Shown here piece after piece: positions 18,704 through 53,841 of a DNA stretch of 64,000 bases. This stretch comes from Chlorokybus atmophyticus. Its lineage: Eukaryota > Plantae > Mesostigma and Chlorokybus algae. How positions within the stretch are numbered: the stretch's first letter is position 1; each line of letters begins with the position of its first letter. The notes beneath the pieces are model-generated. The model searched no databases, was not told the DNA's origin, and worked only from the letters and a program-made list of their open reading frames with translations. The stretch spans positions 455,116 through 519,115 of the forward strand of contig RHPI01003642.1 of NCBI GenBank assembly GCA_009103225.1. Reading direction: 5' to 3'. Both the position numbers and the translations under genes were made by a program.

Positions 18704-19110
18704 CAACGTCGCAAAAGTTTCCCCTGCCGGCCGACTGAATTTTGGCAACGGCCGTGCACCTGAGGATACGCATTTTGATTGTCGACCTTCAGTCTATCGG
18801 CGATCTTGATATAGGGACTTGAGCATAGCGGCCGTCACCATTGGTTGGCGGCCGTCTGCATAAAGGGACCGACTTTAATTAATAGGCACCTGTCAGGTAC
18901 TCAACAGTTAAGCAAAGTGGACTTGACCCAACTAACAAATAACTGACCGGTACCTATCAGTTAGGTACCGGCGACTGTACGCTAACTAAGCAAAATTGTC
19001 AGGTACCTTAAGGTACCTTGGCTTAATGATGTGTACCTTTAAAGGTACTTGCTGGTACCGCTCAGTCATGATTAGGTGTCACACGTGATTGTCGTCAGCT
19101 GTGCAAGAAT
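18704..19110 (+). repeat. E1 left terminal/subterminal inverted repeat
   Basis: Reverse complement aligns with 41690-42090 (e.g. gtatcctcaRgtgcacggccgttgccaa; exact cacagctgacgacaatcac). Five GGTACC copies between 18948 and 19060. Confidence 0.85.
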
Positions 19111-19810: not shown

Positions 19811-21338
19811 CAAGTAGATTGCACTGCTAATTATAATATACAGTCTAGTATGTGTCAAAGCCAGAGTTGCTCAGCAATTCCACACAGCTGGTTTGAGTTG
19901 ATGGTGGGGGACAGCTCTGATATGGACTACAGCATTGCTATGCTACACACCACCTGCTACTAGCTCAACTCATGTCTTTGCTGTGCTAACATATTGTCCA
20001 TGAGTGTTCGCAATCGTCTTCTCAACCTGTCTGCCACTTGAGGATGAAACCAACTCCTTTGCATCTGCACACAACCACACAGCAATAACATGTGGTTACT
20101 AAGCACGTGTCGGCCTACACGACAGTGCTATTGAAGCACCTTCCACTTGTAAACATTGCAGTGCACATGCATGAACTGTACCTATTGAAATATCCGTGCG
20201 TTTGGGTCAATTGGACCAGCTTGTACCCCATCTATAAACTTGTCAAGATAAAGCATGACAAACAACCCGCACGCAACTCCATCCTTCTGCTGAGGGATCT
20301 GCACAAACATGTGTCAATGCTTGCAAACCAAATGCATGTGCATGCATTCAATCGTGCTTGTGACAATGCATGCAAACTCATCACTAGTACAATGCAACGT
20401 GTGCTACCTGTGGTACAAGAAGCTGTACATTTTCGGGAGAGAAGCGTCGTTGTGAGTCACTTCCATGCTTCCTGCCCCACATGTAGTAGTCAAGGTAAGC
20501 GCGCATAGGTCCATCAGCGTTGCGATGCAGGCCAAGGGAGTCGAGATGGACGAGAAAAGGCGGCGTGTCACTTCTAAGTTGGCCTCCAGGATTGCACACA
20601 AGCAGCAGACTCCAGTGAGTCCCGTGCACACAATCAAAATAATTTCAGTCTGCAAATACAGCAGCAATTCAGCAAGATATTCTTGGCGCTTATTCTCACC
20701 GCGTGTCTGGGTTGACAATCACTCCCAGCAAGTCCTTAGCAAACGGATCACTCTCCCACCTGTCTATCATGTGATTCCCGTGTGCCAGGCATTTTATCTA
20801 TGGCAGCGCACGATCTTGGTGTAGAAATGCGGGTGGAACAGCTTCACCAAAATGCCATCTGCTGAGCCTAAGATTTCCTCTTCCTTGTATCTGCATGTGC
20901 ATCCCATGTACATATGAGATACACGAATAACACAAACGCAACAAATCACATACCTGCAAAAGAAGTGGAGGATGGTGTCATTGAGCTCTTGTCTGCCATC
21001 CAGCAACCTCCTGTCCGTTTCAAGCACTGGCAACGCATCACGTGCACTTGCAGTAGGGTAAATGAACAGTGGCTGCGGTGTTGACGGCTGCGGGTTGCTG
21101 ACTGGATCGTCCAGCACCATGATATCATTATCGCTGCCCACGAGGTCCACAGCTGCCGCAGCCGTCGTGGATTGCTGATTACAACCCTCTTCGTCTTCAT
21201 CGTCAACTTCCATCGTGACTGCCTCTGCAGCCATAAATAGTTCAATTGGGCAAGGACCACAACGCAAATCAACAAGCTCAAGCACACAGCAGCTTACCAT
21301 TGTTAGCCTCATCCCCAATCTCTTCAACGTGTTGAACC

Positions 21339-21763
21339 TGTTGAAGGACTAGCATGCACATGTACTTAAGGCAAGCATAGACACACAGAGACAGAGCTAC
21401 CGCCACCAGAGCATACACAAGTTACATCACATTCATCTATTACAAGTTGTCCGCTGGTTCTTATACCAGCCAGTTACACACACGTCTACGTTTGCAAGCA
21501 CTGCGTAAGCTATACTCAGCCTTTTGACGCGCTCTAAGCTGTGTTGTCTTTCTTACAACCAGAGCTTTCCAGCAAGCTCTTACACGCCTAATATGAGTAA
21601 GTGTACGCGGAGATACGAAGCAGTTAGTAAGGCTCTAGTCTGGCGTCCGGAGTCTGGTCCGACGACGCCATCTTGCTAAGTCCGGACCTAGTGCTCATCC
21701 TTACGACCTTCTACTCCTGTGTGGAGGGTCGATGCTGATCGTATGTAGGAATGACTCTTAACA
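21339..21763 (-). repeat. Copia 3' LTR
   Basis: 13 substitutions versus the 5' LTR over 425 bp by manual count (~97% identical). Confidence 0.95.
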
Positions 21764-21805
21764 CTCCCACGCGAGCAGCTTGACCTCCAACACTTGCTCC
21801 TGTAG

Positions 21806-24800
21806 TCAAACACAGATGCCAAGTCCTGCGCAACAAGTCTTGAACTTGAGCGGTGACAATGGCTTTGTCATGAAGTCCGCCAGCATGCCCTCAGTGTTGC
21901 AGTACTGGAACTCCACCTCCTTCCTTGTGACTCTGTCACGCACAAAGTGATGCATAACATCAATGTGCTTCGTCCTTGCCGAGGCGATAGGGTGCTTCAA
22001 CAACTTGATGGCTCCTTGATTGTCATAGTTGATGACGATGCACGCCATGGGGTGCTCCAAATCTGCCATGAGCTTGCGAAGCCAGAGTGCCTCCTTCACT
22101 GCTGCTGCCGCTGCCATGTACTCAGCCTCTGATGTAGATGCTGCTGTTGTTGGCTGCAGCCTGCTATTCCAGCTCACCACGCCTCCGTTCAGCTTGAAGA
22201 CGTAGCCTGTAGTGGACCTCCTGCTGTTGGGGTCACCGGCAAAGTCCGAGTTGCAGTAGCCCTCCAACTCAGTGCTCCCGCTCCCAAACTTGATGCCAAC
22301 TGTTGCGCTCCCAGCAACATAGCGTAGTACTCCCTTTGCTGCTCTCCAGTGCTCCATGCTCGGTGCAGACATGTAGCGAGCAAGTACTCCCACAGCATGT
22401 GCAACATCGGGACGTGTGCACACTGCCATATAGAGCATGCTGCCTACCAGCTCACCATATGGATACTGAGACTTGTCGAGTACCTCCTCGTCCTTTGCCT
22501 TGACGAGGGCAGTGCCAAGTGCCAACGGTGTGGTCTTGGTCTTCGCTTCAATGAGCCCAAACTTGGTGACGAGTCTTCTCACCATCTGCTCCTGACTGAT
22601 CTTGATTGTGCGAGCCGCCCTGTCGCGCTCAATCACCATGCCAAGGAACCACTTGGCCTCTCCAAGATCACGAACTGAGAATGCTTGCTGCAAAGCAAGT
22701 TTCGTCTCCTGCAGGTGGTGCACCTGCCTGGCGGTGATGATGATATCATCAACATACACGAGCAGCCAGACCTTGTTGTCTGCATGGATGAAGAGCCCAG
22801 GGTCTGCAGAGGATGCGGTGAAGCCAAGTGCCTCCAGCTCCTTGGTGAGCTTGATGTGCCACATACGCGGTGCCTGTCGCAGCCCGTACAGTGCCTTGAT
22901 CAGCTTGCACGCTGTGCCTCTCTCCCCTTCTTCATATCCAGGTGGTTGCTCGATGAAGATCTCCTCCTCCAGCTCTCCGTAGAGGAAGGCAGTCTTCACA
23001 TCCAGGTAATACAGCTCTAGGTCTTCAGCAGCAACCATAGCTAGCAGTGCACGGAAGGTGGTATGCTTACTTGCAGGTGCAAACACTTCGTTGAAGTCAA
23101 AGGGCTTCCTGCTGCAAGAAGCCCTTTGCCACCAGTCTTGCCTTGTAGCGCTCAATGTTGCCCTGACCATCACGCTTCACCTTGAAGACTCATTTCACTG
23201 GAATGGTCTACACTCCTTGCGGTAACTGCTCCAGTGACCAAGTGTTGTTGGCATGGAGTGACGCAATCTCCTTGTCCATAGCACGCTGCCATTGCTCCGC
23301 ATCTGGTGCTAACAATGCCTCCTCGTAGGTGCTTGGCTCCTCATTGTGCACACTGACGACGTGTGCCTTGTGTAAGAAGTCAGGTGCCTTTCTCTCCCTC
23401 ATTGGGTATCTCCGAGCTGCGTACTCCTGCTGCAGGTGCGACTGCTTGTCTGCTACAGTAGAGTCCTGCTCACCCTTATCGTCGATGATGGCCTTGCCTG
23501 CAACTCCCCCTTTCATAGGAAGTTCCTCCGGCTTTGCTTCATCTTCATCTCGAGGAAAGAAGCCTGCTTCTGGTTATGTTAATCCCTCGTGGAAAACCAC
23601 CTCTGTGCTCACGATGATGTTCTGAGTGTCCTCGAGCAAGATCCTGTAAGCCTTGGAACCCGGTTCATAGCCAACGAAGATGCCCTTCTTGCTGACTGGC
23701 TCTAGCTTGTGCCTGAGCTGTTTAGGCACTAGTGCATATGCCGTGCATCCAAACACACGCATACCACTCACATCTGGTGTGGCTCCATAGAAGTGCTCCC
23801 ACGGAGTCTTCTGCTCTGAGCTCACCGGAGACCTGTTGCGGATGTAGTTAGCAGTGAGTACCGCCTCCTTCCACAAACTGTCTTCCATCTTTGTGTCGTT
23901 GAGCATGGCTCGAACACGCTCCAAGAGTGTCCTGTTGAGGCGTTCAGCTGCTCCATTCTGCTGCGGGGTGTAGGGTGCCGTTGTCTCGTGGCGTATGCCT
24001 TTGCTGGTGAAGAACTCCTTCAACTCCTTATTGATGTACTCCCCTCCTCGATCACTCCTCATTGCCTTCATCTTGTTGCCAGACTGGGTCTCCAACAAGT
24101 CCACAATTGTGCGCACAGCTCCAGCAACTTCTGACTTCAGTGTCAATGGAAAGATGACGGATAGCTTGCTGCAGTCGTCGAGGAATGTAGCAAAGTACCC
24201 GACCCCTCCCTTCGCCACAATGCGCATAGGGCCACAGACATCCATGTGCACAAGCTCGCAAGGATGCTGACTGCTAGAAGAGGATGATGGGAATGGCATA
24301 GCATGCTGCTTTGCAACTAGGCATGGTTCACAAATTGCACCTGATGCATTCTTGAGTTCTTCTGTGCTTAGATGGATGCCCTTGACCATCTTCTCAGCGA
24401 TAAGGCGAGTGAGGTTGTTGTAGCTGAGATGCCCGAACCTTCGATGCCACAATGTTGGCGACTCCTTGTCCTTCACCATCATGGCTTGAATGTCAATGTC
24501 CTGTAGGTGCTGCTCCACGTGGTAGAGCCCTCCCGGATCAGCGATTCCAACCATGTGTACGACCCCATCAAGGTTGACTGTGCAGCCACCCTTCCAAAAT
24601 AGGATCTCCGCGCCTAAGCGCTCCGCAACCCTCACAGAGAACAGACTCGCAATAGCCTTAGGGACATGCAGAACGTTGCGTAACAACACCTCGCGTAGTG
24701 TGTTACCAACCTTGCAATGGAGTCGTACGTTGCCAGCTCCCTCAGCCACCAGTACTTCACCACCGAAGCCCGCCACTTTGATTGTGGACGTCAGCTTCTT

Positions 24801-25706
24801 GTAGCCCTCCATCACCTCCTTGTTTGGTGTGAGATGACGATTGCAGCCAGAGTCCACCACCCAGAAAGCTGTGCCCGCCCTCGGATTGGATGCAGTGAAG
24901 GCGACATGTTTCTCCTTGTGTTGGTGCTCGTTGCCGCTGTTGCTGGTGCTTGCTCTAGGTTGCCCCTGTTGTTTCTTCCTACAGTCCTTAACAATGTGCC
25001 CCTTCCAACCACACCAATGGCATGTGAGGTCTTTGTGACGAGGATTGCCTGGCTTGTTGCCCTTGTACTTTTCTTCATGGTTGCTCTTTTTGGCGTGCTT
25101 GCCGGTGTAGAAGGCGACGGCATCCGCTTGCTCGTCCTTCTTCACAACCCTCTGCTCCACGGTGAGCAGCTTCGGTAGCACATCGTCCAACGTCAACTCC
25201 GATGATGACGTCTCCAGCAGGGTTGCGACGACCTCGTACTCTGCTGGTAGCCCTGCAACAATGGCCAGCACTACCTCCGTCTCCCCCATGTCGTGGCCGA
25301 CGTTGATAAGGTCCGCCCATAGCTCTCTCGCGCGTGCAACATACTTTGTGATGGGTTCTGCTGCCTCCTTTCTGAGTGCGCTGAGCTGCTTGCGTAGATG
25401 CAACTTTCTGGCATTGTTCTTGGCTCTGAAAACGGCTGATAGCTTTTCCCAAGCTTGTCTACCATCTTCACATGCAGTGAGCATGGGAAAGTGATGCGGT
25501 TTGCTGTTCAACACAAGCATAGAGTGTGCTTTTGCTGAATGCTCTGACCACACAGTGTTCGCTCCTGGTGTTGGTGGTGGTGCCTTCGGATCAACGTACT
25601 TCCACACCTTCTTGTGGATGAGCAAGGCCTTCATCTCCACGCACCATGTGTTGTAGTTGTCGGTGTCCAGCTTTGCAATCTGCCCCTTGTCGTAGGTCGC
25701 CTCCAT
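21806..25706 (-). pseudogene. Copia gag-pol (gag with CCHC, protease, integrase, RT, RNase H)
   Basis: CHWCGWKGHIVKDC; WVVDSGC; LWHRRFGH..CEPC; DVCGP / SDRGGEY / NGAAERLN; LLVYVDD; RNase H GYCNSDFAG with D>N. Stops and frameshifts near 23574 and 23100-23210. Confidence 0.93.
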
Positions 25707-25817
25707 TTCTGTCGAGCCTGCCTTTCTTGCAGTTGACACCCAAGGCTCTGCTACCAACAAGCTACCGTAGTGTAGAACTACTATGCACACAAGCTAGTCT
25801 CACACTCCTCAAGCGTA

Positions 25818-25833
25818 GTGTGGGCCCATAACC
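25818..25833 (-). promoter_or_regulatory. Primer-binding site GGTTATGGGCCC (half-tRNA-iMet type)
   Basis: Immediately follows the 5' LTR on the minus strand; same type as Drosophila copia and Volvox Osser. Confidence 0.88.
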
Positions 25834-26258
25834 TGTTGAAGGACTAGCATGCACATGTAGTTGAGGCAAGCATAGACACACAGAGACAGAGCTACCGCCA
25901 CCAGAGCATACACAAGTCACATCACATTCATCTATTACAAGTTGTCCGCTGGTTCTTATATCAGCCAGTTACACACACGTCTACGTTTGCAAGCACTGCG
26001 TAAGCTATACTCAGCCTTTTGACGCTCTCTAAGCTGTGTTGTCTTTCTTACAACCAGAGCTTTCCAACAAGCTCTTACACGCCTACTATGAGTAAGTATA
26101 CGCGGAGATACGGAGCAGTTGGTAAGGCTCCAGTCTGGAGTCCGGAGTCTGGTCCGACGACGCCATCTTGCTAAGTCCGGACCTAGTGCTCATCCTTACG
26201 ACCTTCTACTCCTGTGTGGAGGGTCGATGCTGATCGTATGTAGGAATGACTCTCAACA
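25834..26258 (-). repeat. Copia 5' LTR
   Basis: Direct repeat of 21339-21763. Confidence 0.95.
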
Positions 26259-26836
26259 GAACCCCACTCTGCACAGGTTGTGAAACCCTACCGCAACTGC
26301 CCGGCAGAGAACGACGAGCAAGCATCGCCCTTGATAGCTGCGCTGGAGCACCACCTTCTTCGTACGCAGCGCATTGCAAGCACGTAACCTCAACCATGCT
26401 ACCCACAGCATGCCGTCGACAGAGGCTGTTTAGACACGTCGCGCAGACTTGAAAAGCTGCTTCGTTGCAGTTCTTCACATGGCACCTGTGTTTTGGTTCA
26501 ATACAAGTGATGATGGTTCTAGGAGTGAAGTTCCTCACAACAAGATGCCAAGCATTTGCTGCAATAAAGTCCACTTACTCATGCCTTGGGCACTCCCAAT
26601 ATTTATCCTCCACAGGTGGCATAGAGACACAGTGCGCGTGGTAGCTTTTCCAGCAACCTTCCACATCGCAGCAAGATATGGTGCCCCCATCCTTGCAGAC
26701 AAAGCAGTAGTCTTCATGTTCCCGATGTTCCAACGCATCCAGCTCCAGTCTCGGTCTCATCCTGTGAACAAAGGTTCAGTGGCCAGGTCTACAGTCTCAC
26801 AGTAGGGATATGAGGCATCACAATCGCAAACAGTAC

Positions 26837-29800
26837 CTCTTGTACTCAAAATGCCAGTCGCGGCGTGTGGTCCATGACACCTCGCTCGAGGCGCTATTGG
26901 TTTCGCTTTGGGCACCCTGCACCAAGTACACAAGATGGTTATATGTGATGCCAAAACCCAGGATATATGAGGACATCCAGATTCTAATGGACAACACTGT
27001 TAACTCTCCTCTTACCGGAGTGTCCCAGTGCATGCCTCGATGCATGAGACTGCGCCTGTCTTTAACAAGCGCTACTGTTACTTTGTTGTCATGGGGATCA
27101 ATTCCCTCAAACCACTGGCCCTTGACCTGCCAGCAAGAAGGGATATTCATCAGCCATTTTCATACTACTAAAATTTACTATCATCACATCAAGCACACGC
27201 AAAAACGATTGCAACACAGCCACTTACCAGGTTGCAATCAAGGTAGGTTTGTTCTGCAAAGCGGGGCTTGTCTTTTCTTGGGGATTTCTTGGGGATTGCA
27301 AATCCTCCACTGTGCTGGACTTGGTTGCTCATGTATCACCTAGCTCTGAGCAGCTGGTGCTCCCGACCAGCTATCACCACAACATCAAAAGATTGCACCC
27401 TGCCATACCAATGGATCTTCTTGGTTGGGTCATGTGAGTCACGCCCACCGGTAAACACGCCACAGTCCACGGTGCGGAGTTTCTTCTCCATTTCCTCTGC
27501 TCTGAACTAACCGATGTCCTTATAGCGTGCTCTGAAGTATCGCTTGATGTACTTTGGAAAGATTGGACCGCTCAACAGCTCCATCTCATGCTTTGTAAGC
27601 TCCCTAGCAGGTCCACGCCAGTGATGCAGCTCATTCATATGCTCCATGTCCTTTGCCACGACATGTCCTTGTTTTTGAGCCCTTTCCCTTGCCATCCTGC
27701 GTTTGTTCACCTCCCGATTGAACTCTCTGTGTAGCAGCAACCCATAAAATAAATCATACTGTCTGCCCGTTGGACATTACGTTAAAAAATAGCAACTCCC
27801 AAAGCAACTTACTCTTTTAACAGCCTGTATTCATCGTCATTTTCAGCCAACCACCACTCGAGCTCCTGCCTTGTCTTACTATCTTTATCCCCAACCTCAA
27901 TACGGTGTCTCCGTCCGCAGAGCACATAGTCGTCATCATCTCGTTGCTTGCCCGATTGCAAACTGATGTCGGAGAAAAGTCGCTTCAAGGTGTCCATGTA
28001 AGTGTTCAGCATGAGCTGGATAAAGTATCTGCAGATGCAACTGGCACTTGAACAAGGCAAACAATGTGGAAAGTTTGCACGTAACTCTCAGTGGGCTCAC
28101 ACAAAACTTGCCTTTTGTAGATGCTTGCTTCCACATGCTGCCTTGCAATATCATGCGCTTCACCCACTGCATAAAGCGTTCATGTGCCCACTCCCAGTGG
28201 TCACGCGTCGGACCAAGCCACATGCACTGCTCTGGTAGATAGCCAAGGAGGTGCAGCATCATTGTGAGAGAAGTTCGCGGGAAGAACAGCTCCACTTCAA
28301 ACTGTGCCTCATGCATCAGCACCTGCACTAAGTAATAAGCTATGCATGCCATATGAGCTGGGCATGCAGAGTGAAGTGTTATTAAAGCCAACCTTCAATT
28401 CGTCGAGGTGTGACTGCTTTACTTCCAATGCAGTCAGCCTTTGATAGATGTCGCATAGTTTGAAGATGGTTCTCTTCTGATCTTCTCCAATGTCGTGTGC
28501 AGAGCGCAGCACGTACTGAAAAACGACCGACCATAAGTCGTGCTTGTCGTGCGATTTCATCGAGCCTGCATGCTCCATGTCAAAAGTTCCATGCATGGAG
28601 AACCATTGCTTTAGCGTAAACACAAAACATATAACGACTATCTCACCTAAATGCTTTGTGAAAGACTACAGTTTCGAGCCGAAAGTGCTTGAAACCCTCT
28701 TGCCGGAGAGCAATTGCTCAACCAGTCCTACATCTGTAATTGTCCATGGAGCCTGCGGTTTTACCTTGACTGCGACTTCCTTTCCATCCTTCATCTTCAT
28801 CTCTGTCTGCAGCACATAGGTTCAAGTCCTTGGTTAAATCCAACTATGGCACATGTCAACGAGGCCGACTATATACGTACCTCTAGCCAGAGTTTAGGCA
28901 TGCGGCCTTGCTGTTGCAGATCTTCTCGTGACTCGATGCTGTCGCGCAAGCCAGCTAGGAGATTTGCAAAGTTGGTTGCCAGGTTGGCAAAAATGTGCAT
29001 AGGGCCAACCACATGACCTTTGACAAATTTTTGTAACGGTAGCCAATATGGAAGGTCGTGGAAACAGCTCAGTCCAAGGATGCCGGAGGACTTTGAAGGA
29101 TGTCTCTTGGAGTGCAGTGGACGCTTGCTGTTGCGAGATGTCATAGCATACCTGATCACATGGCATCCATTGCTGACATACCTATGTTCTGCAACCGAAT
29201 GCGCAATCAACTGAGATTGCTCACCTGTACACGCTCTCTGCAGTCCGCATGGGTGGTGGAGGTCTGTGTTCTGGTTGCGGCCAATGCTCATCAACTCTGT
29301 AAGGATGGTCATCCGGTAGGTACCGGCGGTGGCCTTGATAGATCACCTTTTTGAGAAGTTCCACATGTTCTCCACTGCACTCGCGCTTTGAACAGCCAAA
29401 GATGGCTCCATGCGCCATCTGCAAGGCAGCTTTTGCCGGAGCTGCGCAACCAACATGATGTACTTCAGTAGCCACAACCATGGTTGCAAGGACAGTCCGA
29501 TATACAGTCAGACACTGATAACAGTAAGTGCAAACACCGACACCGAGGTCTTACATGCCGCCTCAGCGCCACGCCGACACACAAACAAACACAGGCAAAG
29601 AAACCGAGGTCTTACATGCCGCCTCAGCGCCACGAACACAAAAGCACAAGGCACGGACACCGAGGGCTTACATTGGACTGCCCCAGCCGCTCACCAACAC
29701 AATCATGCACACAGCCGTGCCTCATTTACCACTGAACTTGGCAATGTTACCGTGTATAATTCGCATAATCCCATCCTGACTTCGATTTGTGTGCGCCACC

Positions 29801-31320
29801 ATCTCCGTAGCAACACTAGGTTTTAGGTACAGAGCCCTCAGCGCAGCAGGCACGTCAAAGTAACGCCCAATCTTCCATGCAACTTGTCTACCTCCTATGT
29901 TGCGGTAGCGAGGGGCCTTGCAGACTGCATAAGCAAGTCGTATGCTGATGGGACATGCTAATCAAATCCCATTGTAGTGAACATTTGCAACAATTGCTCA
30001 CCTTTGCAAAGTATCCTGTTGGCATGTCAGCCACAATACAACATGTGATCACAGCGACATGCATCGTATATGTGGAAGCCCATGTTGAGGCCTTCAAGGC
30101 ATTTCAATAGCTCGTGCATGCTGCCTAGCATCTTATTCTCCGTAGGCAAGAGGATGCCACGCAACAACCTGGCACACAAAAACACATCAGTTTTGAACAG
30201 GCTGATGTTTCAGCAGTCAGCAGTATAATTTACCCACCAACCTGAGCAGTTTATTCATGAAATTGAATGGTATTCGATGTAGCTGCGCCAGAACCAATAG
30301 CAGCATGGAAATGCCTAGAGGGATTGTACGAGAGCCGAAAACAACAGGGTTGCTTGCATTAACCAGCAACGCAGCATTCACCTTGTAAAGTAGCATGGCA
30401 AATCAACGCATTTAGCCTCGTCCGGTTGCGATTCCACATCGGTTTCATAGTCTTGGTCTTCGCCGGCAACATCACCTTGCTCCGCAACACCTTGCTCCGC
30501 ATTGACTTGCTCAGCAGTGGAGGTGCAGTGCACTGGCGTCTCAGGCTCTACTTGTCATTTGTGGATTTGGTTCTGGCACCTTGATGCTCTTGCAATGTAG
30601 CATTCTCAATTCCACAAAATGCTGGGTGAGATCCGCGTTGTTCTCCATAAGCACATTGTCCTTCATGAGCACACGGATTACAAACTGCCAGCTGCAATGA
30701 GTCTAATGGCACATGAACAATGAGAGGCACAGCATCAGCAATGTCAACATGCCACGCAAGTCAGATCGTACCTGCTGGTTGCAAGTTTAATGCAACAATG
30801 AAAGGAGATTCAACACTCGGTTGCAACGGCGTGCCTGTGTCAACATGTTCAGTAGCATCGTTCCCAACTAGCAATTGTTCGGTGTCATGGAGAGCTTCAC
30901 CTGGGGCAAGCCAGATCAATGATCAAACAGCCTGTTGTATAGATTCACAGCTGTAGAGAAGTTGCTCTTGTACCTGACGACTTGTGTAAGGATGCAGCAG
31001 CAACAGCAGCATCAGCTTCTTCAAGTTCATGGGGTTGTAGCTATAGTCGATCACGGTATTCAGGAGCAACGGCTTCTGGAGTGCCACACCACATGTTTTT
31101 GCCAAAGTTTTCATGATATTCAGCCCTTTTAATGTGGTTGTGCGTGAACACTTTGCTCCCTTTGCGCGGCAAAAACACCTGCGAAAGTAGCTCATGCTAC
31201 AAACATCAAAAGCAGTCAGCCAACATACTGCAAGCAACTTCCAATCAACTTCCATACAGCCAAAGCAAAGACCTGCAGGCACGCTGCCGCCGCTGACACC
31301 GCCGCCGTCGCCGCCGTCAT
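26837..31320 (-). pseudogene. EnSpm/CACTA TnpD-like transposase, multi-exon, disrupted
   Basis: LLPTENKM..FHIYDAC..HMLY; KKVIYQGHRRYLPDDHPYR; DLPYW..PMHIFAN; MKSHDKHDL; ELFFPRTSLTMMLHL..LGPTRDHWEWAHERFMQWVK (DUF4218-like); WYGRVQ and DEYPFLLAGQ (DUF4216-like). Several stops and frameshifts; first-Asp core segment not found; start approximate. Confidence 0.87.
29542..29690. repeat. ~60-bp tandem repeat (accgaggtcttacatgccgcctcagcgccacg), 2.5 copies, intronic in TnpD
   Basis: Copies at 29542, 29603 and a partial copy at 29659. Confidence 0.85.
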
Positions 31321-31484
31321 GACTGCCTACCGTAAATTAGGGTTTAGGACACATCCAATCCCGATTCAAAACAAGCCGGAAAGTCAATCCGGATATGCTC
31401 CACAATTTGCGTACGTGCTCCTTTTCTTCTTCCGTCCAGTGCATTAGCTTCTAGGGTTTGTGTGCCAGGCAGCGTGGCGCCAGC
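31321..31484. promoter_or_regulatory. Divergent promoter between TnpD and the methyltransferase, with telo-box motifs
   Basis: TTAGGGTTTAGG at ~31337 and CTAGGGTTT at ~31451. Confidence 0.55.
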
Positions 31485-33110
31485 ATGCGCGGCGTCAAAG
31501 TGTGTAGCTTCTGCAAAGCATACTTGGTTAGGAATGGCAACAACATACGTCTGCAACAGCATAAAGAGAAGTGCAAGCTGTACAGTGAGCAGTATGGCTT
31601 CTATGAAGCCTGCTGGCACCACAAGGCAAGGGGGGACAATGTGAGGCAATGCAGACTGCTGCCACAATGCATGAGGCTAGATTTCTTTTGGGAGGAGTGC
31701 ACTTGCCTTCAGTGCTCGCTTTCCAAGTTTGAGTGGGACGGCGAGCCCATGAATCACCTGCCTTGGGCACGGCCTGAAGCATATCACGATGGGCAGATGT
31801 GCAATGCGGTTCGACGTCAGCTCGTGCGCAACGGTCGCGGCAAGTCCACTGTAATCGAAGACGATGCCAACAACAGGGTGAGTTGAACTGTCCTTGCAAA
31901 CAGCAAAACAGCGTTTGCATGCATGACCAACTTACTCTTGAATGCCAAAGGGGAACGCGGTTGTCGACGATGTCGCGACACTGGCTGCTTGGCGGAAGGA
32001 GATTGTTGATGAGGGGCAGTCTTTGGTAGCAAGCCGCGTTGTGGTGTACTGGCCAGGAATGAGCTCCTGGTATGCAGGCCACATCATCACTTTTTATGCC
32101 AACAGGTATACTGCAGAGTATTTACATGCGCACGCTCATGCAAGCACCGGCTCAGGCAAACATGTGGCTCAGGAAAACATACCATCAAGTATGACGATTT
32201 CGTTGAGGACCCACGGCTGCACCACATCTTGATAAAAAACTGGAACATGGCAGCTGTGCGTGAGGGTTACGACGTAATGGTTCGTGTTGGTGGTCAAAGC
32301 TGTCTGAAACTGCAAGACTTGCCTGGTCGAGAGCTCGATCGGTGGCCCAAGCCCCCACCCCTTCTGATCACTCGCACACCAATAGACTCAAACGGAAGAC
32401 GTTGCAGGCCGCGCGCACTGGATCTCTTTTGCGGCGCTGGTGGTGTAGCCATGGGTCTGTACAGGGCAGGGTTTGATGTTGAGGGCATCAACAACCAGCC
32501 ACAACCGTCATACCCATTCAAGTTCTGCCAGATGGATGCAATGGACGCTGACCCGACAGCATACGATGCGGTGTGGGCAAGTCCTCCATGCCAAGCTCTA
32601 AGTGGGGCCATTCCCACTACACTGCGCTCTGCGTACGGCAATCGATGGGAGCACGTCAACCTGATTGACCCCATAAGAGCCAAGTTGCAGTTGAGCGGCA
32701 AGCCATGGGTGATAGAGAATGTCGCAGGCGCATCAGGACACATGAAAACTCACCTGAAGCTGTGTGGCACCATGTTCAAGTTGGATGTGTATCGTCATCG
32801 CATTTTCGAGACAAACCCTCCACTGCACTCAGACTTGAAATGCAACCACACTGGTTGTGCACTTGGAGAGCTGGCCACCCACCCGGAGCAGCGCCGGCAG
32901 TTGCTACCTGGGGAGAGGAAAATTTACCCGGTGTACGGCCAAGCATCATGCCGTGGCACGATTGTAGGGTGGTAGTTTGCCATGCAGGTGGAGTGGACGG
33001 ATGCGGAATCGGAAGTCAAGAATGCCATTCCACCAGCTTACTCTGAACATGTAGGCAGGCTGTTGCTGGAAGCAATAGGCTTTACTGTTGATTACCCTCC
33101 TTTTTACTGA
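31485..33110 (+). pseudogene. C5-cytosine DNA methyltransferase A: Cys/His-rich N-domain, Tudor-like domain, bacterial/phage-type catalytic domain; one premature TAG
   Basis: Three in-frame exons. Tudor-like LVASRVVVYWPGMSSWYAGHI..KHTIKYDD. Motifs I ALDLFCGAGG, IV WASPPCQ, VI IENV, VIII RHRIFE, X NAIPPAYSEHVG. TAG at 32973-32975 where the paralog has Gln; final TGA 33108-33110. Confidence 0.9.
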
Positions 33111-33170
33111 AAGGTAGAGTAGCTCTTGATTGCTGGCCACTTTGTTAGCCTGAACTCAAACCCAACAACA

Positions 33171-34330
33171 GAATGAGCGACCCAATAAAGTCAGCAAGAG
33201 GTCTTAATCACGAGGATGCCTCTGTTTGCCAGCACGGGAAAGACTGACCTGCTGGGCAGGGTCTCTTCCAGAGCACCTTCATGCCCTATTGCGCCGTCCG
33301 CCCACCCGAGATTAGACCTCCTGCGGGTTCACTGCGAACGCAGGGTATGGTCCAACCAAAGCTGACTCGCGAAAGTCATGAACCAGAGGCTCTGAGCATG
33401 TGCACAAAGTCTACAGTACGTGACTTGCGCGAGACGGCTCTGCAAGACCACATCCTGTGTTCGCGGTAAACCCGCAGGAGGTTTTGTGTCGGGTGGGTGG
33501 GCGGAGAAGGAGAACTTCTAGGTTGCTGTGCGCATGCCTTTGGTTGCGTGCAATCTTTGGACACATGCCCGGTTTCAGCGGTTGCCGGGGCCAGTACGAG
33601 GGCGTGCCAGTACGAGGGCGGCATGTCAACAGCAGCAAGAGAATTTCTCTCGGGTGGGTGGGGGGAGAAGGACTGCCAGCCTGAGTTGCCATATCACAAA
33701 CAGCAACCCAACCCCAGCGGCAGGTACAACCGCCGTCCATCCAACAGCCCTGGAGCAGATCGCGACCAACAAGGCGGTGCGTTCGCAGTGAACCCGCGTG
33801 CAGTCGGGATGATCCTAAGCATACAAGGACAGGCAGATGTGGGTGATTGCATTTTGCTGCAATTCTTCAACACACACAGACAGGCAGCTAAAGCTAACAC
33901 ACTGGTTGTATACTCTGCCAACATTACACACCCCATGTCTAAGGCTGAGTCACCATATCCGCTGACATGTACACCTCGGGATTGCACAAAGATCTTGGAA
34001 TTGTATTTCCTCTATCCTGTACAAAGACCACGAAATTGTCTTTCCTCTATCCTGTCATGTCAAGCTCCTGTCATGTCACCTGGAAGAACACCTCCACTTC
34101 TTGCTGGTTAGCAGCGAAAGCAGGTGGCACAGGCAAGAAGGGGGCAAGAAAGTGAGCAAGAAGGGGGCTTAATCACAGGGTGATGCCCCTACGCTCTGCA
34201 TACAAAGACAGAATGAGCAAGCAGAGGGCTTATTCATGAGGATGCCTCTGCATTCAGCATGAGCTCAGACCCGAATCGGGAATGAGAAAACAGAGGGCTA
34301 AATCTAGAAGATGCCTCTGTGTTCAGCTTG
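33171..34330. repeat. Dispersed ~65-70-bp degenerate repeat (gaatgagc...gaggatgcctctg): one copy at 33171, three tandem copies at 34150-34330
   Basis: Read by eye. Confidence 0.55.
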
Positions 34331-37690: not shown

Positions 37691-37950
37691 ACCAGCGTTA
37701 CCACATGTTAACAATAATCATGCTGAACATCGAATACATTACTTATTACCTGCAGGCTTAAACTGGCCGAGGGGAACGAGCTTTCGCTTGGACAAAATGA
37801 ACGACCTGAGGAAAGCCTCACAGCCAAAAACAAGCACACATAGTTGAGCAACATGAGCACTTGAGCATGCACACTCACACACGGCTGCCTATTTGAGCAT
37901 GCAGACAAGCCTGAGCATGCACACTTTAGCCTCAGCCACAATGAAAACTG

Positions 37951-38200
37951 CATGCTCAAATAAAACAGCTTGGAAACTGAGCAACAGGTGGTTTTACGCA
38001 CGAGGCCGCCCCTCTGGTTAGCATCAAGTGGTGGCTAACAAGAGTGCATGCTCAAATAAAACAGCTTGGCAACTGAGCAAGAGGTGGTCTTACGCACGAG
38101 GCCGCCCCTCTGGTTAGCATCAAGTGGTGGCTAACAAGAGTGCATGCTCAAATAAAACAGCTTGGAAACTGAGCAACAGGTGGTCTTACACACGAGGCCG
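37951..38200. repeat. 96-bp tandem repeat, 2.6 copies
   Basis: catgctcaaataaaacagcttgg... starts at 37951, 38047 and 38143; internal GTTAGC..GCTAAC stem. Lies between the divergent OTU/gag and TnpA genes. Confidence 0.93.
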
Positions 38201-38234
38201 TCGTTGTATACTCTATCTACAGGAGGGCATCATC

Positions 38235-41689: not shown

Positions 41690-42277
41690 CACAGCTGACG
41701 ACAATCACATGCAGTACTTGCTCGTGACTGAATGGTACCGATAGGTATTGGGGACAGTGACATCAAGTACCTTGAAGGTATCATAAGGTACCCCAAAGGT
41801 ACCTGATAGTTGGGTACCTTCGAGGTACAATCGCTGGTACCTAATTGTTGGGTACCGGTTAGTTAGGTCAAGTCCCCTTCACTTGACTGATGGGTATTTA
41901 ACAGGTACCTGTCAGTCTAGGTCAGTCCCTTCATCAAAACGGCCGCCGCCTGATGGTGACGTCCGTTGTATCCAGGTCTTTGTATCGAGATTACAGGTGG
42001 ACTGAAGTACGACAGTCTAAATGAGTATCCTCAAGTGCACGGCCGTTGCCAATATTTCATCGGCCGGCAGGGAAAACAATTTGCGACGAGGCAGGCCACC
42101 GTCGATTGTACTTATCGGTCGACCGCTTGCCGTTGGTATATGTTGCTTGATAGTAACGGCCGTCCTAAAAAGTCCCTTTATGGACCAATCCGTTACGTCA
42201 GGTAGGGTTAGGCAGGGTCAGGCACCCGTCAGTCCCTCAGTCCCTTGTCGGTCACCGTGTAAAATTTGCGACGAATG
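41690..42277 (-). repeat. E1 right terminal/subterminal inverted repeat
   Basis: Inverted match to 18704-19110, plus an extra ~190-bp terminal block. Seven GGTACC copies between 41730 and 41910; TTTGCGACG occurs twice. Confidence 0.85.
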
Positions 42278-46734: not shown

Positions 46735-47200
46735 CAACGTCGCAAACTTTACACGCTGACTGACTAAGGACTGAGGGATTGACTGGTGCCTGAGCCTGCC
46801 TGAGCCTGCCTGTCACTGCCTGAAATATAACTTGTGGACTGTTGGGTTTGCCGTTGGCTTAAATGGACTGACGCAGATGGCCGCGGGCCGAAAGTGGTTG
46901 TCAGTGGCACTAACCGGCCGAGAGTTGTCAACCAGTTACCCTTTGGTCGATGTGCACAGACGGCCGTTAGCCGGTAGTTACGGACAGCAAGCAGCAATAG
47001 CCGGCAGTTTCTTTACCGTTACACTGCTGTTAATACGTGACCCTTGCCGTTTGACAACAGTTGGCAATTCTTGCCGTAAGCCAACACTAACATGCCATGC
47101 AGCTTGTACAAACCTTGTACTGATTGTTTGGTCTTGCACCTATAAGCCCACAATATATACAATGTACCGGCAGTGGTGAGAGTATGTCCACTTGCAACTG
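46735..47200 (+). mobile_element. E2 left terminus, related to the E1 ends
   Basis: caacgtcgcaaactttacacgctgactgactaaggactgagggattgactggtgcctgagcctgcctg aligns over ~70 bp with the reverse complement of the E1 right end (cattcgtcgcaaattttacacggtgaccgacaagggactgagggactgacgggtgcctgaccctgccta). No matching right end in the window. Confidence 0.75.
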
Positions 47201-48777: not shown

Positions 48778-51700
48778 ATGGGAGTCCTTTGTCTGTATTG
48801 CCACATGCGCTTCGCCACACGTAGCTCGGCCTACATGCACATTATTAGCAGCAGGGTGTGCAAGCAGATCAAGCTGTATGTCGGCCAGCGTCCATTACAG
48901 TACGATGCGGGTCATGTTGAACCGGGGAGTTCGATCCAGGATGCGCACATGCTTGATGTTGAAGGATTCTTCCAGGAGACACACGCACAGCAGCAACGGG
49001 AGGAGGAAGTGAACGAGGGCTTTCGATGTGTGCGTATGCCTGAGAAACCTGTGGCACGCTTACATGGAAGTGGAGGCGTCCCTTCGCACGCGTTGGAATC
49101 CAGGTGGTATGGCTTGGAGCATGCTCTTGCAGTGGCATTCGTGCAGTGCAACAATGGCCAAGGCCTTTCGGCCTCCGACATGGGGCGGATCATCAAGTGC
49201 ATCCGAAATGCACATTTCTTGACGGAAGAGCTCCAGTGGGAGACTGGTGTGCATGTGGCCAGCTACCTCCGGACAACAATTGCTTTCTCTCAGTCTGAGG
49301 TGTGCTCACGGTGTGCGGTGCATGTGCTTCAACCATCAGAGCCATGTCACATATGCACATGCGAGTGTGCTGCCGTATCAGAACTACGTGACGGCTGACC
49401 TGCGCAAGCCTGGAGACCCTGAGGATTATGACATCAGCGTCACATATATGCCGGCCAAGGTCTGTGAAATGCAGTACCTAATGCAATATCGATGCAGTAT
49501 CTATTCTGAGGCCAGCATAGTAAGTAATGCTCTTGGTCGGAGCAGGTATGGCTCGCGCGGTTGTATGGCAATCCACATGCCGCCAATGGCTTCAATCTCC
49601 AGTACAGTGGTGACGAGCACAGCTTTGGCCATCCTTCCACGAGCGATTGGTGGAAGGATGTGGAGGTGGATTTGAGGAGAGAGGTGGGGGAAGCGTCCTA
49701 CTTGGCGCCTGCCATTCTGTACAGTGACAAGACCACGCTGTACAGCGCGCGCAAGCGCTCTGGCTACCCTTTGATGGCATCGCTTGCCAACTACAGTTGG
49801 GACATGTATGCTAGCAACATGGGGGTTGTTATGATAGCGCTTCTGCCGATGGTTCACGCAGTGGCCGGGCATCCCACCTGGGCGCAGGGCAAGGAATCGT
49901 TCTCCATTCAAAAACGTGAGGTTTTTTATGACGCTTTGAATGTAGTGTTAGGGGATGTGAAGCGGGCGAGTTGGGAAGGTCTGCAGCTCATCGACCCGAA
50001 TGGCATCGAGCGTCGTGTGTTTCCCCCGCTTGCCAACTACATCAGCGATTTGCAGGTAGTGGGCATGAATGGTTGTACCTAGATGCAGCCTGCCAGCAAA
50101 CAGTGCATGGAGGATGTTGTCAGTAGAACATCTGAGTTTGTCGTGTTATAGGAGACTGCCACACTCGCACGCACTGTGTCCGGCAACCAAACACGACATC
50201 TTTGCGATGTTTGTCTCGTCACCAAATCAAATCTGTTGGAGATGGTTGAGGACCGGGAATTGAGAACCGAGGCCTTCTACACACCAAGAATACGTCAGCT
50301 GCGGGCGGACCTCCATAGCGGTGTTAGGAATGCACGCCAGGCAGCTAAGGCTTTCAAAGAGCAGCACTCCATGCATGTCGAGGAGGTAATGATCAAATTA
50401 TCGGCATTCGTGAGGATGAATGGCTTTCCGTAAAACCAGGCAATGTGGTTTGGCAACAGGATGCACTGTGGGATTGGCGACAGTCGCGGGTGCCGGGAGC
50501 TGACTGCTACTCTCGTCTTGCCCCTGACGCAATGCATGTGCTGGGAGGCATCATTGACCACCTGCTTGCTGCTGTGTACGACGCCGCGAAGGAACGAATA
50601 CGTCCATCCACGAGACAAATTCTGCAGGCCAGGCACGTCTTTGGTGTTGCTTTTGTGTTGAACACAAAAGCCAACGACACGTGCTCACAAGCAGATGTGC
50701 ACAGGCTGAATGCATGCAAGGCGACTCTGCGGGTTTCGCACTTTAAGGCACCCACAAGCAGTAGATTTCTTCCTGTCCAACCACTCCTTTCAGGTGGTGG
50801 AGAAAGTGGCGGTGCTGCAGCTGCTGCCGGTCCTCGCAGACGGTTTGCTGCTCGACGGTGAGGGCAACGATTTCTTCACCATTGCTGCCGCATCGCTTGC
50901 CCAGTGGAACAAGAAGTTGCTCAAGTTGCTCAAGGCCCATGAATACACAAGAGAGACCCTGACCACAGCCGACAACGAGCTGGCTGCCTTCAAAGCTGCA
51001 GTGTTGCATCCGCTACTGTCGTCATATTCTGCACAGAAGTCAGGTTGGATGATCGAGATGCATCAGCTCACTCATGTTGGGCCGGCAATTGTCAGCAGTG
51101 GACACCCAGATTGGTTCAGCGCCAACCGCATGGAGCAGACGCACGCCCAAAATATCATATGGTGGGCGCGTGGTGGCAACCGGGACTACCAGGCACGTAT
51201 CCTGAAGGCTTGGAGCTGTGCGGGATATGTGAGAGAGGATGGCATGGTCGTGGTTCCCGAGATGCGCTCGGTCATGGCGCAGGCGCGGCAGCAGTGCTGC
51301 AATGTCATGGAGAAGACGGACAAGTTGTTACGGATGGATGTGCTGACAAGGAGGGAGTCCAGCCCGTACTGGAGCGGATATGCGCGTAGCCGCCAAGTCG
51401 CCTTGAAGACTCCATTTGCCGACAAGTTGCCTGCCACCTTGGACAACTGGTTGAGGAGGGAACAACTGGAGTTCGCCGACGGGTGGCGTGCTGTTCGCGT
51501 GGTGAACGGAGGCGCAGCGGTGTACATGACATCAGGAGTCAGCATGGCGCGCGCAACTGGGATGTTCCATGGGCCTTGGTTCTCTACACTTGAGTTGGAA
51601 GGTGATGAGGACGGTGTGAACGTGACGTGGTGGGCTCAGGCACTCTTTTTTCTGTGCGTGGTGGTGTGGGGTGGTAGCGGCGAGCGCGTGTGGAAGGAGG

Positions 51701-52118: not shown

Positions 52119-53841
52119 CTAAGCCTCATAGTTCCATGACACAGGAGGGTAGTCACAGCGCATATCCATTGTTTCAAGCATGAGACGCCCTATGCACTCC
52201 GCCATTGCGGGAGGAACTGCATTCGCTATGGAAACGGCCGAGGTCATCCATGGCACTCCCAGCGCTGTTTGCCACGCAGCAATGCCGCCCCTGGTGCTTG
52301 GAAGGCCATAGACCGGGTACATTTGCTGTGGCGCGTTTGATGTCACGATTGTCTTCTTCGCGCTAGCGGACAGGTGCGGCGATAGCAGTCCAACTGCCTT
52401 GCCCGCGTGCGAGCAGTGTGCTGGTGGGGTAGCTACGACTGGCTGTGTCTCAAACAGACGGTGTCGGAAAGTTGATAGGCCAAACATCGTGCCACAAAGG
52501 GACTGATTGGGTCTGAATGAGGAAGCTGCTCCTGGCACATTCTCAATCACAAACTTGACCTGACTTGCAAGCAGCAGACGTCGGATGAGCGGTATCATAT
52601 CCTGGTGTCTCCAGGATGTGTCATGTGCCGCCCGTTGAGGTGCCGGGATAGCACCTGAATAGGCCTGGCATGGTGGACTGGCCTAGATGAGCTCGTACTC
52701 GCTCAGCTCTCCTGCACTCAGGGTGCATACATCGCGGTGTATGAAGGGCAGCGGGTACTCAAAGGAGGGACTTATGTCCATCCCGGTCACGTCAAAGCCT
52801 GCGTGGTATAGACCGCCACTGGCACCGCCACCGCCGCAGAATAACTCGAGTGCCCTTGGTCTGCGTGTGCGTCCAAGCTTGTTGTCAAATGGCGTGTGTG
52901 TGGTCAAGGCTGGCCGTGGTGCTGGCCAGGGACTAACAATGATGCCGTTCGGGCTTACTTTGCGACTGACGTTCTCCCCTCCAGCGCGCAGAACATGGCG
53001 TGCCCCGTCAACTGATGTGAACGCGAATGCGTTGTGCCCTTTGAAGTTGATGGTTTGTGGTCGATCACCGTCATCGAATACTATATGGTGCTGCCCTGCA
53101 AAGACATTTTTCATTGCACCATGCATATATGATGCGTCCTCAATCTCGCACGCCAGGAAGCGATGCTGACTTGACGCTTGCTTGAATGATTCCACAACGC
53201 CCGCATACCATTCCCCATCCAGCGGCCAATGCACCACGACACTCATACCGATCAGCTGCTCGCATCCCAACTTAATTGCATTCCGCAGCCGATTCAGTGC
53301 GCTGTCCAATGGTCGATGGTCTGCCTCCTCTACAGCGGCCAGGGGATGGAACCGCCCACGCCCACACCGTGGAAGACTGCTCTGAATGCGACAACAGCTT
53401 CGGCATGCATGAAATAAGCATACGCCCAACATAACATGCAGTGATACGTCGCGGTCCACTCAGCCGAATTACCTCCACAGCATCCACCACCTGTCCACTA
53501 ACCACATGTCCCGGTGTTGTCCATGTGAAGAAGCGCATGGGTTCCCCTCGCCACTCGAAGCATGAGCGCGATTCGCACACGCACTGCACGCAATGGAAAA
53601 ACTCGGGTTCCTTGCACAGCACGTGGCCGAGGCGGCAGCAAAACACGTCGACATTGTGTGTGGTGTGATGCCAGCAATCAGCACTAACACCGTGGCACAC
53701 CGTCTGCACTCGCTGGCATTCGGTCAAGTGTGCTCGCATCTGCTGCCTACGGCCATTGGCACATACGTACGCATTGCATTGTGGGCACACCAAGCATGGT
53801 CTCCTAGGTGAGGGGGATTCAACTGCTGCCGCCGACATCAT
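52119..53841 (-). pseudogene. C5-cytosine DNA methyltransferase B, same Cys/His-Tudor-MTase architecture as copy A; one premature TAG
   Basis: CPQC..H..C..CWHH..CVQCVC..FEWRGEPM; Tudor-like LIGMSVVVHWPLDGEWYAGVV..HHIVFDDG; ALELFCGGGG, *ASPPCQ (TGG>TAG at 52683-52685), IENV, LCGTMF, RHRLFE, NAVPPAMAECIG. Confidence 0.9.

Follow-up and report, generated by a model that had tools for sequence, protein, structure and literature searches.

A probable transposon-borne fusion of Tudor and Cys/His modules with a phage-type C5 DNA methyltransferase in the alga Chlorokybus atmophyticus

Introduction

Transposons are usually regarded as the targets of DNA methylation. Mobile DNA can also carry enzymes that act on this mark: orphan, laterally acquired eukaryotic DNA methyltransferases (DNMTs) have been described, including those of dinoflagellate long interspersed nuclear elements (LINEs) and of endogenous giant viruses (PMC12344493), and the dinoflagellate SymbioLINEs are cited as encoding DNMTs (de Mendoza et al. 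2018, as cited in PMC12344493). Dioxygenases of the TET/JBP type are cargo in fungal KDZ/Plavaka and other DNA transposons (PMC12730594); in Chlamydomonas, too, DNA transposons carry TET cargo, and a giant-virus TET enzyme is nested among them (PMC13692296). Here, we analyze a gene, copy 1, that lies at 31485-33110 on the forward strand of a 64,000-nucleotide stretch of the green-lineage alga Chlorokybus atmophyticus (assembly GCA_009103225.1, contig RHPI01003642.1, positions 455,116 to 519,115), together with its paralogue, copy 2, in the same stretch. This whole stretch is referred to below as the window, and all coordinates are positions within it.

To our knowledge, methylases carried by the mobile element itself are so far known from retrotransposons, and DNA transposons are known with the opposing TET enzymes; a charophyte retrotransposon reportedly also encodes a DNMT. 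For a Tudor-C5 methylase borne by a DNA transposon, we found no description in the literature. The interpretation that we prefer, and to which we assign a probability of roughly 0.65, is that copy 1 is a recently inactivated cargo gene of large cut-and-paste DNA transposons of this alga, with a phage-type methylase whose nearest kin are giant-virus-like.

Results

Anatomy of the gene

Copy 1 is a three-exon gene that joins a Cys/His module, a Tudor domain and a compact C5 DNA methyltransferase. Exon 1 (31485-31877, 131 aa) encodes the Cys/His N-terminal module (N-module), with the motifs CSFC (31503-14), HKEKC (31560-74), CWHH (31611-22), CTCLQC (31698-715) and FEWDGEPM (31728-51). Exon 2 (31951-32105), which has suffered a 2-nt deletion after 32101, encodes a linker and the first half of the Tudor domain; exon 3 (32173-33110) supplies the second Tudor half, a further linker and the entire intron-less methyltransferase domain. 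The Tudor-like unit is marked by VVVYWP (32038-55), WYAG (32068-79) and KYDDF (32187-201). The methyltransferase motifs LFCGAGG (32424-44), SPPCQ (32580-94), IENV (32712-23), LCGTMF (32760-77), RHRIFE (32793-810) and AIPPAY (33024-41) follow one another in such a way that motifs I (FxGxG), IV (PC), VI (ENV), VIII (RxR) and X stand in the canonical order.

Two putative introns separate these exons. The first (31878-31950; 73 nt, GT31878..AG31950) is in phase 0 and joins the frames of exons 1 and 2 without a stop; the second (32106-32172; 67 nt, GT32106..AG32172), which has a 75-nt counterpart in copy 2, is in phase 1 in the intact allele. We infer this splicing from the GT-AG sites, the reading frames and the equal intron position and phase in copy 2. 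A preliminary description of the locus, made from the sequence alone, had quoted the motifs and the order of the three parts, and all of them lie where it had placed them; the two GT-AG introns likewise agree with the spliceosomal introns that it had proposed. It had further described an N-terminal Cys/His domain with a CxxCxC motif: the domain is there, but copy 1 reads CxCxxC (CTCLQC) and CxxCxC is the form of copy 2. A chance open reading frame (ORF) or an artefact was dropped as an explanation in view of the E-values obtained (5e-23 against the phage profile phrog_363, 2e-54 in a protein library and 3e-92 against copy 2) and of the collinear paralogue.

A compact methylase of phage type

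The methylase hardly registers with the general family profile. The piece that precedes an in-frame stop in copy 1 matches PF00145 marginally (22.4 bits vs. a cut-off of 22), which is the only Pfam match in the gene; its relatives P0203 and P0190 score 30-34 bits. Phage sequences detect it far more readily: phrog_363 matches with an E-value of 5e-23, and tblastn found DNA methyltransferases about 40% identical in 310 phage records, mostly of actinophages, 151 of which cover at least 80% of the query. An exhaustive HMMER search of 1.8 billion representative proteins returned 3740 relatives (best E 2e-54); the comparison of the catalytic part with all PDB chains by phmmer gave no match of the DNMT1, DNMT3 or M.HhaI type at E-values up to 0.01. 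The preliminary view that this is a compact enzyme of phage or bacterial type, and not one of the DNMT1, DNMT3, CMT or DRM families, is thereby upheld. The top-scoring library matches are proteins with two tandem compact C5 methyltransferase domains (P0001, at L008:779-2140, P0002 and P0077); the gene of P0001 adjoins ThyX on a short contig whose genes overlap and which looks phage or bacterial.

Does the family still methylate DNA? It might instead comprise an RNA 5-methylcytosine enzyme, or a dead scaffold that only reads chromatin. The marginal Pfam score would be in keeping with such a loss, as would the lack of an obvious target-recognition domain in the compact relatives (the window methylase has only about 60 residues where this domain would sit), and DNA methylation activity is here a prediction. 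Nonetheless, motifs I, IV (PPC), VI (ENV), VIII (RHRxFE) and X are kept in both copies; nearly all residues that are at least 85% conserved in the family are retained, and so are the invariant columns, save for the Asp of motif II, which is Asn in copy 1. Moreover, the annotated phage relatives are DNA methyltransferases, and virus-like relatives carry an MBD, a domain that binds 5-methylcytosine (5mC) in DNA. We therefore regard a family that has abandoned DNA methylation as distinctly improbable.

Nearest relatives and the viral connection

The closest methylases differ from the phage enzymes in having an MBD (PF01429) as an insert that separates motif VIII from motif IX. Neither window copy has this insert, but the window gene and the MBD methylases share C-terminal features such as (F/Y)PVYG...RGT...W and an end in (T)V(D/N)YPP. 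In a maximum-likelihood tree (IQ-TREE; 71 rows, 213 columns; built without DNMT1, DNMT3 and DNMT5, and unrooted inside the virus/transposon clade), both window copies fall in a clade with support of 100/97 that contains 13 MBD-bearing methylases, P0005 and P0203 and excludes the bacterial and phage members; within it the two window copies pair with each other (90/84), and the enzymes of actinophages lie elsewhere. The contigs of several relatives of this clade are dense and intron-less and encode a D5-type primase-helicase, topoisomerase II, mRNA capping enzyme and triphosphatase, TBP, YqaJ, the small subunit of ribonucleotide reductase and an aquaporin. P0005, too, is on a giant-virus-like contig, and the contig of one relative comes from a Chromochloris zofingiensis run. 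On this sequence comparison, the nearest methylase relatives are giant-virus-like enzymes and not those of phages, and the methylase probably did not come directly from bacteria but by way of giant viruses and/or transposons. The preliminary description had proposed a prokaryote-type methylase, horizontally acquired, that gained a histone reader. In outline this stands, and the phylogeny places the enzyme outside the known actinophage enzymes, with virus-like methylases; what needs revision is the picture of a simple host acquisition, for the gene sits, as probable cargo, in a transposon bounded by terminal inverted repeats, and its nearest kin are giant-virus-like.

Could the gene be a remnant of an endogenized giant virus (GEVE), later interrupted by introns and invaded by transposons? 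The residence of the nearest methylases on giant-virus-like contigs, one of them from the Chromochloris run, is what would be expected of such a fragment. However, its virus-like relatives lack both the two introns and the eukaryotic Tudor front and carry an MBD insert instead; the neighbours that we examined, in a scan of the window that was not exhaustive, are transposase, Copia and other transposon genes, with no viral hallmark genes among them; and in the tree the window pair (90/84) is one of several lineages of uncertain branching order within the clade, from whose viral subclades it is excluded, although it may yet nest among the viral lineages. An endogenized virus is consequently a very remote prospect in our estimation.

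The MBD-inserted compact C5 methylases on giant-virus-like contigs deserve mention in their own right. In four of them (L001:9239-10534, L003:8803-9858, L006:2028-3050 and L007:2874-3716) the MBD sits where the target-recognition domain would, and on L001 and L002 the gene is divided between two ORFs, the first for the methylase and the second for the MBD. Such an MBD-methylase, judged from its domains, would be a built-in 5mC reader-writer and could act like a maintenance enzyme. Our literature search found no paper on giant-virus-like MBD-inserted methylases.

The Tudor domain and the Cys/His module

Among solved structures, the best match to the Tudor unit is that of Arabidopsis RDM15/PDS5C (PDB 7DE9), with E-values of 2.3e-5 for the region of copy 2, 0.023 for exon 2 of copy 1 and 1.8e-7 for a profile of both copies. 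This result supports the Tudor-like character that had been surmised earlier. The next PDB matches of the two-copy profile are the Tudors of 53BP1 (E 0.15-1), and the second Tudor half alone has no PDB match in either copy. RDM15 reads H3K4me1 by means of a cage of W616, Y623 and Y641, together with D643 and D645 (PMC8184781). When these five positions are mapped (W616 and Y623 from the HMMER alignments, the second half placed by eye from the residue numbers in PMC8184781), copy 2 reads W, Y, F, D, D and copy 1 reads W, Y, Y, D, V. The aromatic cage is therefore kept in both copies, with the full cage and both Asp residues in copy 2 and in part in copy 1. The PDS5/MSH6-type Tudor is a plant-lineage feature (bioRxiv 10.1101/2025.05.08.652912) and, because of this, the front of the gene looks host-derived.

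The N-module is a conserved Cys/His domain of zinc type and of no known family. Eleven ligand-type Cys and His residues are invariant between the copies (C7, C10, H26, C30, C43, H45, H46, C56, C62, C74 and C77), as is FEWxGEPM. No relative was found in Pfam, even at an E-value of 10, or by a word-index search, and a feature search of the ESM Atlas gave no usable match. A similarity to the C5HCH-bearing ORF of the transposon described below was also considered and dismissed, as BLASTP matched 18 residues with an E-value of 0.007, which is not meaningful. In a structure model based on the two-row alignment, the first 37 residues form a hairpin and a helix that place C7/C10 and H26/C30 in the manner of a C2HC finger; with a predicted local distance difference test score (pLDDT) near 50, the resemblance is no more than suggestive.

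A paralogous copy and long-term selection

Copy 2 (52119-53841, reverse strand; exons 53841-53473, 53327-53171 and 53095-52119) is a paralogous Cys/His-Tudor-methyltransferase gene. It is 37% identical to copy 1 (E 3e-92) and collinear with it over its full length, from the first CxxC to the C-terminal DYPP; its Tudor intron (53170-53096, 75 nt) has the position and phase of intron 2 of copy 1. A single in-frame TAG (52685-52683) replaces the Trp of (V/I)WASPPCQ. The possibility that this break before ASPPCQ marks an intron was considered and ruled out: the sequence reads as a plain in-frame TAG.

Since the copies are only 37% identical, they are old lineages and not a local duplicate. Between them, the proportion of synonymous differences (pS) is 0.74-0.93, which is saturated, while that of nonsynonymous differences (pN) is 0.41-0.50 in the N-module, the Tudor domain and the methylase alike. 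Because of this disparity in all three parts, purifying selection is judged to have long maintained the three-part architecture, up to the inactivation of each copy. The methylase part is intron-less in both copies, and the introns are confined to the eukaryotic front, a distribution that fits a viral or prokaryotic origin of the methylase.

Transposon context

Copy 1 is enclosed by a 23.4-kb cut-and-paste DNA transposon, E1 (18707-42088). Its inverted ends (18707-18980 and 41825-42088) are about 275 nt long and 74% alike, and both begin with the terminal motif CGTCGCAAA, at 18707 on the forward strand and at 42088 on the reverse strand; a search for further inverted ends nested around copy 1 within E1 found none. 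Head-to-head with copy 1 lies the multi-exon transposase gene of E1 (26206-31320, reverse strand; outer limit taken as 31320), a tnp2/DUF4218 transposase of EnSpm type that lies 165 nt upstream of copy 1 on the opposite strand. Its domains, each just under the Pfam cut-off, are Transposase_21/tnp2 (29221-29481), DUF4218 (27936-28391) and C5HCH (26206-26574).

Copy 2 has a transposase neighbour of another kind, a Plavaka-type exon (49561-50082, forward strand; PF18759, E 2e-20) that lies tail-to-tail with it. Upstream is the left end of a second element, E2 (46738-46812, forward strand), which has the same terminal motif as E1 and has copy 2 downstream of it. The 9-mer CGTCGCAAA occurs four times in the window vs. 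0.5 expected (18707-18715, 42080-42088, 42265-42273 and 46738-46746), always at the ends of elements. Elements with different transposases share a terminal motif; in coding sequence, E1 and E2 resemble each other in the methyltransferase gene alone.

This last observation can also be turned the other way, for a domesticated host gene family devoted to chromatin-guided DNA methylation and residing in a transposon-rich region, with the transposases as mere bystanders, might present a similar picture. The sharing of nothing but the methyltransferase gene by E1 and E2, the differing orientations relative to the transposase (head-to-head in E1, tail-to-tail in E2), the want of a target-site duplication and of an E2 right end in the window, and the long purifying selection in all three parts can be read in its favour. 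Against it, matching 275-nt inverted ends enclose copy 1, and none are nested more closely around it; both copies adjoin transposase genes and both are dead, as decaying transposon copies would be; and, at 37% identity, they are old lineages and no local duplicate. A host gene family is thus unlikely in our judgement, and transposon cargo is the interpretation that we retain.

Several other features of these elements were recorded. A nested Copia long terminal repeat (LTR) retrotransposon (21335-26129, reverse strand), which has 300-nt LTRs that are 97% alike, splits the transposase region of E1; it contains RVT_2, a copia-type gag, rve and Pol_BBD, in long gag-integrase and reverse-transcriptase ORFs. 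A 96-nt unit is repeated three times in tandem at 37944-38231 in E1, with similarities of 95% and 77%. Just downstream of copy 1, within 33275-33523, is a 78-nt inverted repeat, 74% complementary, with arms 93 nt apart; it is built on the motif GGGTGGGTGG/CCCACCC, which recurs at 33635-33661, and may be an insert resembling a miniature inverted-repeat transposable element or a terminator-like hairpin. A solitary piece at 42199-42273 resembles a right end and is 85% alike over 75 nt with the left end of E2.

Lesions and intact variants

The preliminary description had mentioned a TAG in copy 1. There are three lesions in all, and the three sites are intact in X1 and X2, contigs of DNA runs from two further public studies that are about 98% alike and were aligned to window 30800-34300 (most of the aligned X1 contigs are at least 95% alike). 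The in-frame TAG (32973-32975) precedes motifs IX/X; X1 and X2 have CAG (Gln), with C for T at 32973, and copy 2 has Gln as well. The motif II codon (32490-32492) is AAC (Asn) in copy 1 and GAC (Asp) in X1 and X2, with G for A at 32490; the acidic Asp is present in 99% of 69 other aligned family members. The third lesion, the 2-nt deletion at the end of exon 2, puts the canonical splice of intron 2 out of frame, and the only alternative acceptor that preserves the frame is AG32154-55; in X1 and X2, an extra AC after 32101 restores the frame across the 67-nt intron (..FYANTG|KHTIKYDD..). Judging by these contigs, a variant that looks intact is present in other isolates, or else represents another copy of the element. 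Both X1 and X2 also lack 108 nt at window 33901-34010, an indel relative to these near-identical copies.

Between X1 and copy 1 (30800-34300), T>C and A>G differences number 27 vs. 14 of the reverse, so that T or A in copy 1 opposite C or G in X1 is about twice as common; this is consistent with an excess of C>T/G>A changes in copy 1, a direction taken without polarization by an outgroup. Separately, the nonsense mutations at 32973 and 52684 are both transitions at the C of a CAG/CTG (CHG) context, CAG>TAG in copy 1 and TGG>TAG in copy 2, where the C>T change is on the opposite strand. These CHG-context transitions and the C>T bias would, on small counts, fit deamination of methylated cytosines.

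Discussion

The domain homologies, the lesions, the position of copy 1 between transposon ends, the virus-like clade and the signature of long purifying selection can be accommodated together if the gene is recently inactivated transposon cargo. A number of points weigh against this interpretation. E1 shows no target-site duplication (its flanks are CAA and AGG), and its termini begin with CGTCGCAAA and are not CACTA-like. E1 is itself dead, split by the Copia insertion, and for E2 no right end was found within the window; cargo status is shown for copy 1 alone. The introns and the expression of the gene are inferences from its sequence. In the reader domain, copy 1 has Val at the position of RDM15 Asp645, and the structure models are too poor for a test of the fold, both for the N-module (pLDDT 36.9) and for the Tudor region of copy 2, modelled with AlphaFold2 including 25 read-through intron residues (pLDDT 46.4). 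The X1 and X2 contigs could be another transposon copy and not an allele; the coding differences between them and copy 1 are 9 synonymous and 19 nonsynonymous in an incomplete list (pN/pS about 0.6), a ratio that fits relaxed constraint in one or both. Finally, the viral label of the relatives' contigs comes from their Pfam gene sets, in which no capsid gene was seen.

If intact copies function as their domains predict, the Tudor cage would dock on a methylated lysine of histone H3, similar to H3K4me1, and the Cys/His module might contribute contacts with DNA or chromatin. The methylase could then place 5mC at short motifs of the DNA wrapped at that site, and by this means the mobile element would set the methylation of itself or of its neighbourhood, to its possible benefit. 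A bolder extension is that a mobile reader-writer module, composed of the Cys/His domain, an H3K4me1-type Tudor and a viral-type C5 methylase, moves among several DNA-transposon superfamilies and the giant viruses of green-lineage algae and, when intact, deposits 5mC at a particular histone mark; this we advance tentatively, as a conceivable but doubtful scheme, in which the exchange between viruses and transposons might have run in either direction.

If this interpretation is correct, transposons, and not the host alone, would shape the algal methylome, and the gene would be the writer counterpart of the TET erasers borne by transposons and viruses. A histone reader joined to a viral-type 5mC writer in a cut-and-paste transposon would amount to a compact natural "epigenome editor". 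The gene links phages, giant viruses and transposons and offers a testable case of mobile DNA manipulating chromatin, for which the intact, near-identical X1/X2 variant provides material for expression tests.

Comparison with known systems

The actinophage methylases (phrog_363; e.g. Mycobacterium phage Kimona gp80) belong to the same compact fold family and have the same motif order, with about 40% identity over the whole catalytic domain, but they are single-domain prokaryotic enzymes of about 220 aa that fall outside the virus/transposon clade. Nearer are the giant-virus-like MBD methylases (P0003, P0167-P0174, P0004/P0168, P0009 and the Chromochloris-associated P0007), which are 46-55% identical to the window copies and share a clade with them; these are, in contrast, intron-less genes on dense virus-like contigs, with the MBD insert and without a Tudor or Cys/His front. 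For the front, the comparison is with the Tudor domains of RDM15/PDS5C (7DE9, the best solved match) and of plant MSH6, which sit on cohesin-regulator or mismatch-repair proteins, whereas that of the window sits on a methyltransferase and its histone binding is predicted.

As a mobile arrangement, the locus resembles the retrotransposons that encode DNMTs (the SymbioLINEs and the charophyte element), in that a mobile element has its own C5 cytosine methyltransferase. In those elements, however, the methylase lies within the retrotransposon coding region and is of another methylase lineage, while in the window a spliced gene of its own, inside cut-and-paste DNA transposons, encodes the methylase together with Tudor and Cys/His modules. 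The TET/JBP enzymes of DNA transposons are alike in being 5mC-acting cargo of large cut-and-paste elements, Plavaka relatives included, with signs of exchange with giant viruses; they oxidise or remove 5mC as erasers, whereas the window enzyme would write it and carries a histone reader. In architecture, the closest parallel is the one drawn in the preliminary description, N4CMT of the bdelloid rotifers, which is said to be a host gene that unites a prokaryote-type N4-cytosine methyltransferase with a chromodomain as its histone-mark reader. The analogy is sound in that both genes join a prokaryote-type DNA methyltransferase to a eukaryotic reader of histone marks; it gives way in the chemistry, which is C5 and not N4, in the reader, a Tudor and not a chromodomain, and in the setting, the cargo of a transposon and not a gene of the host.

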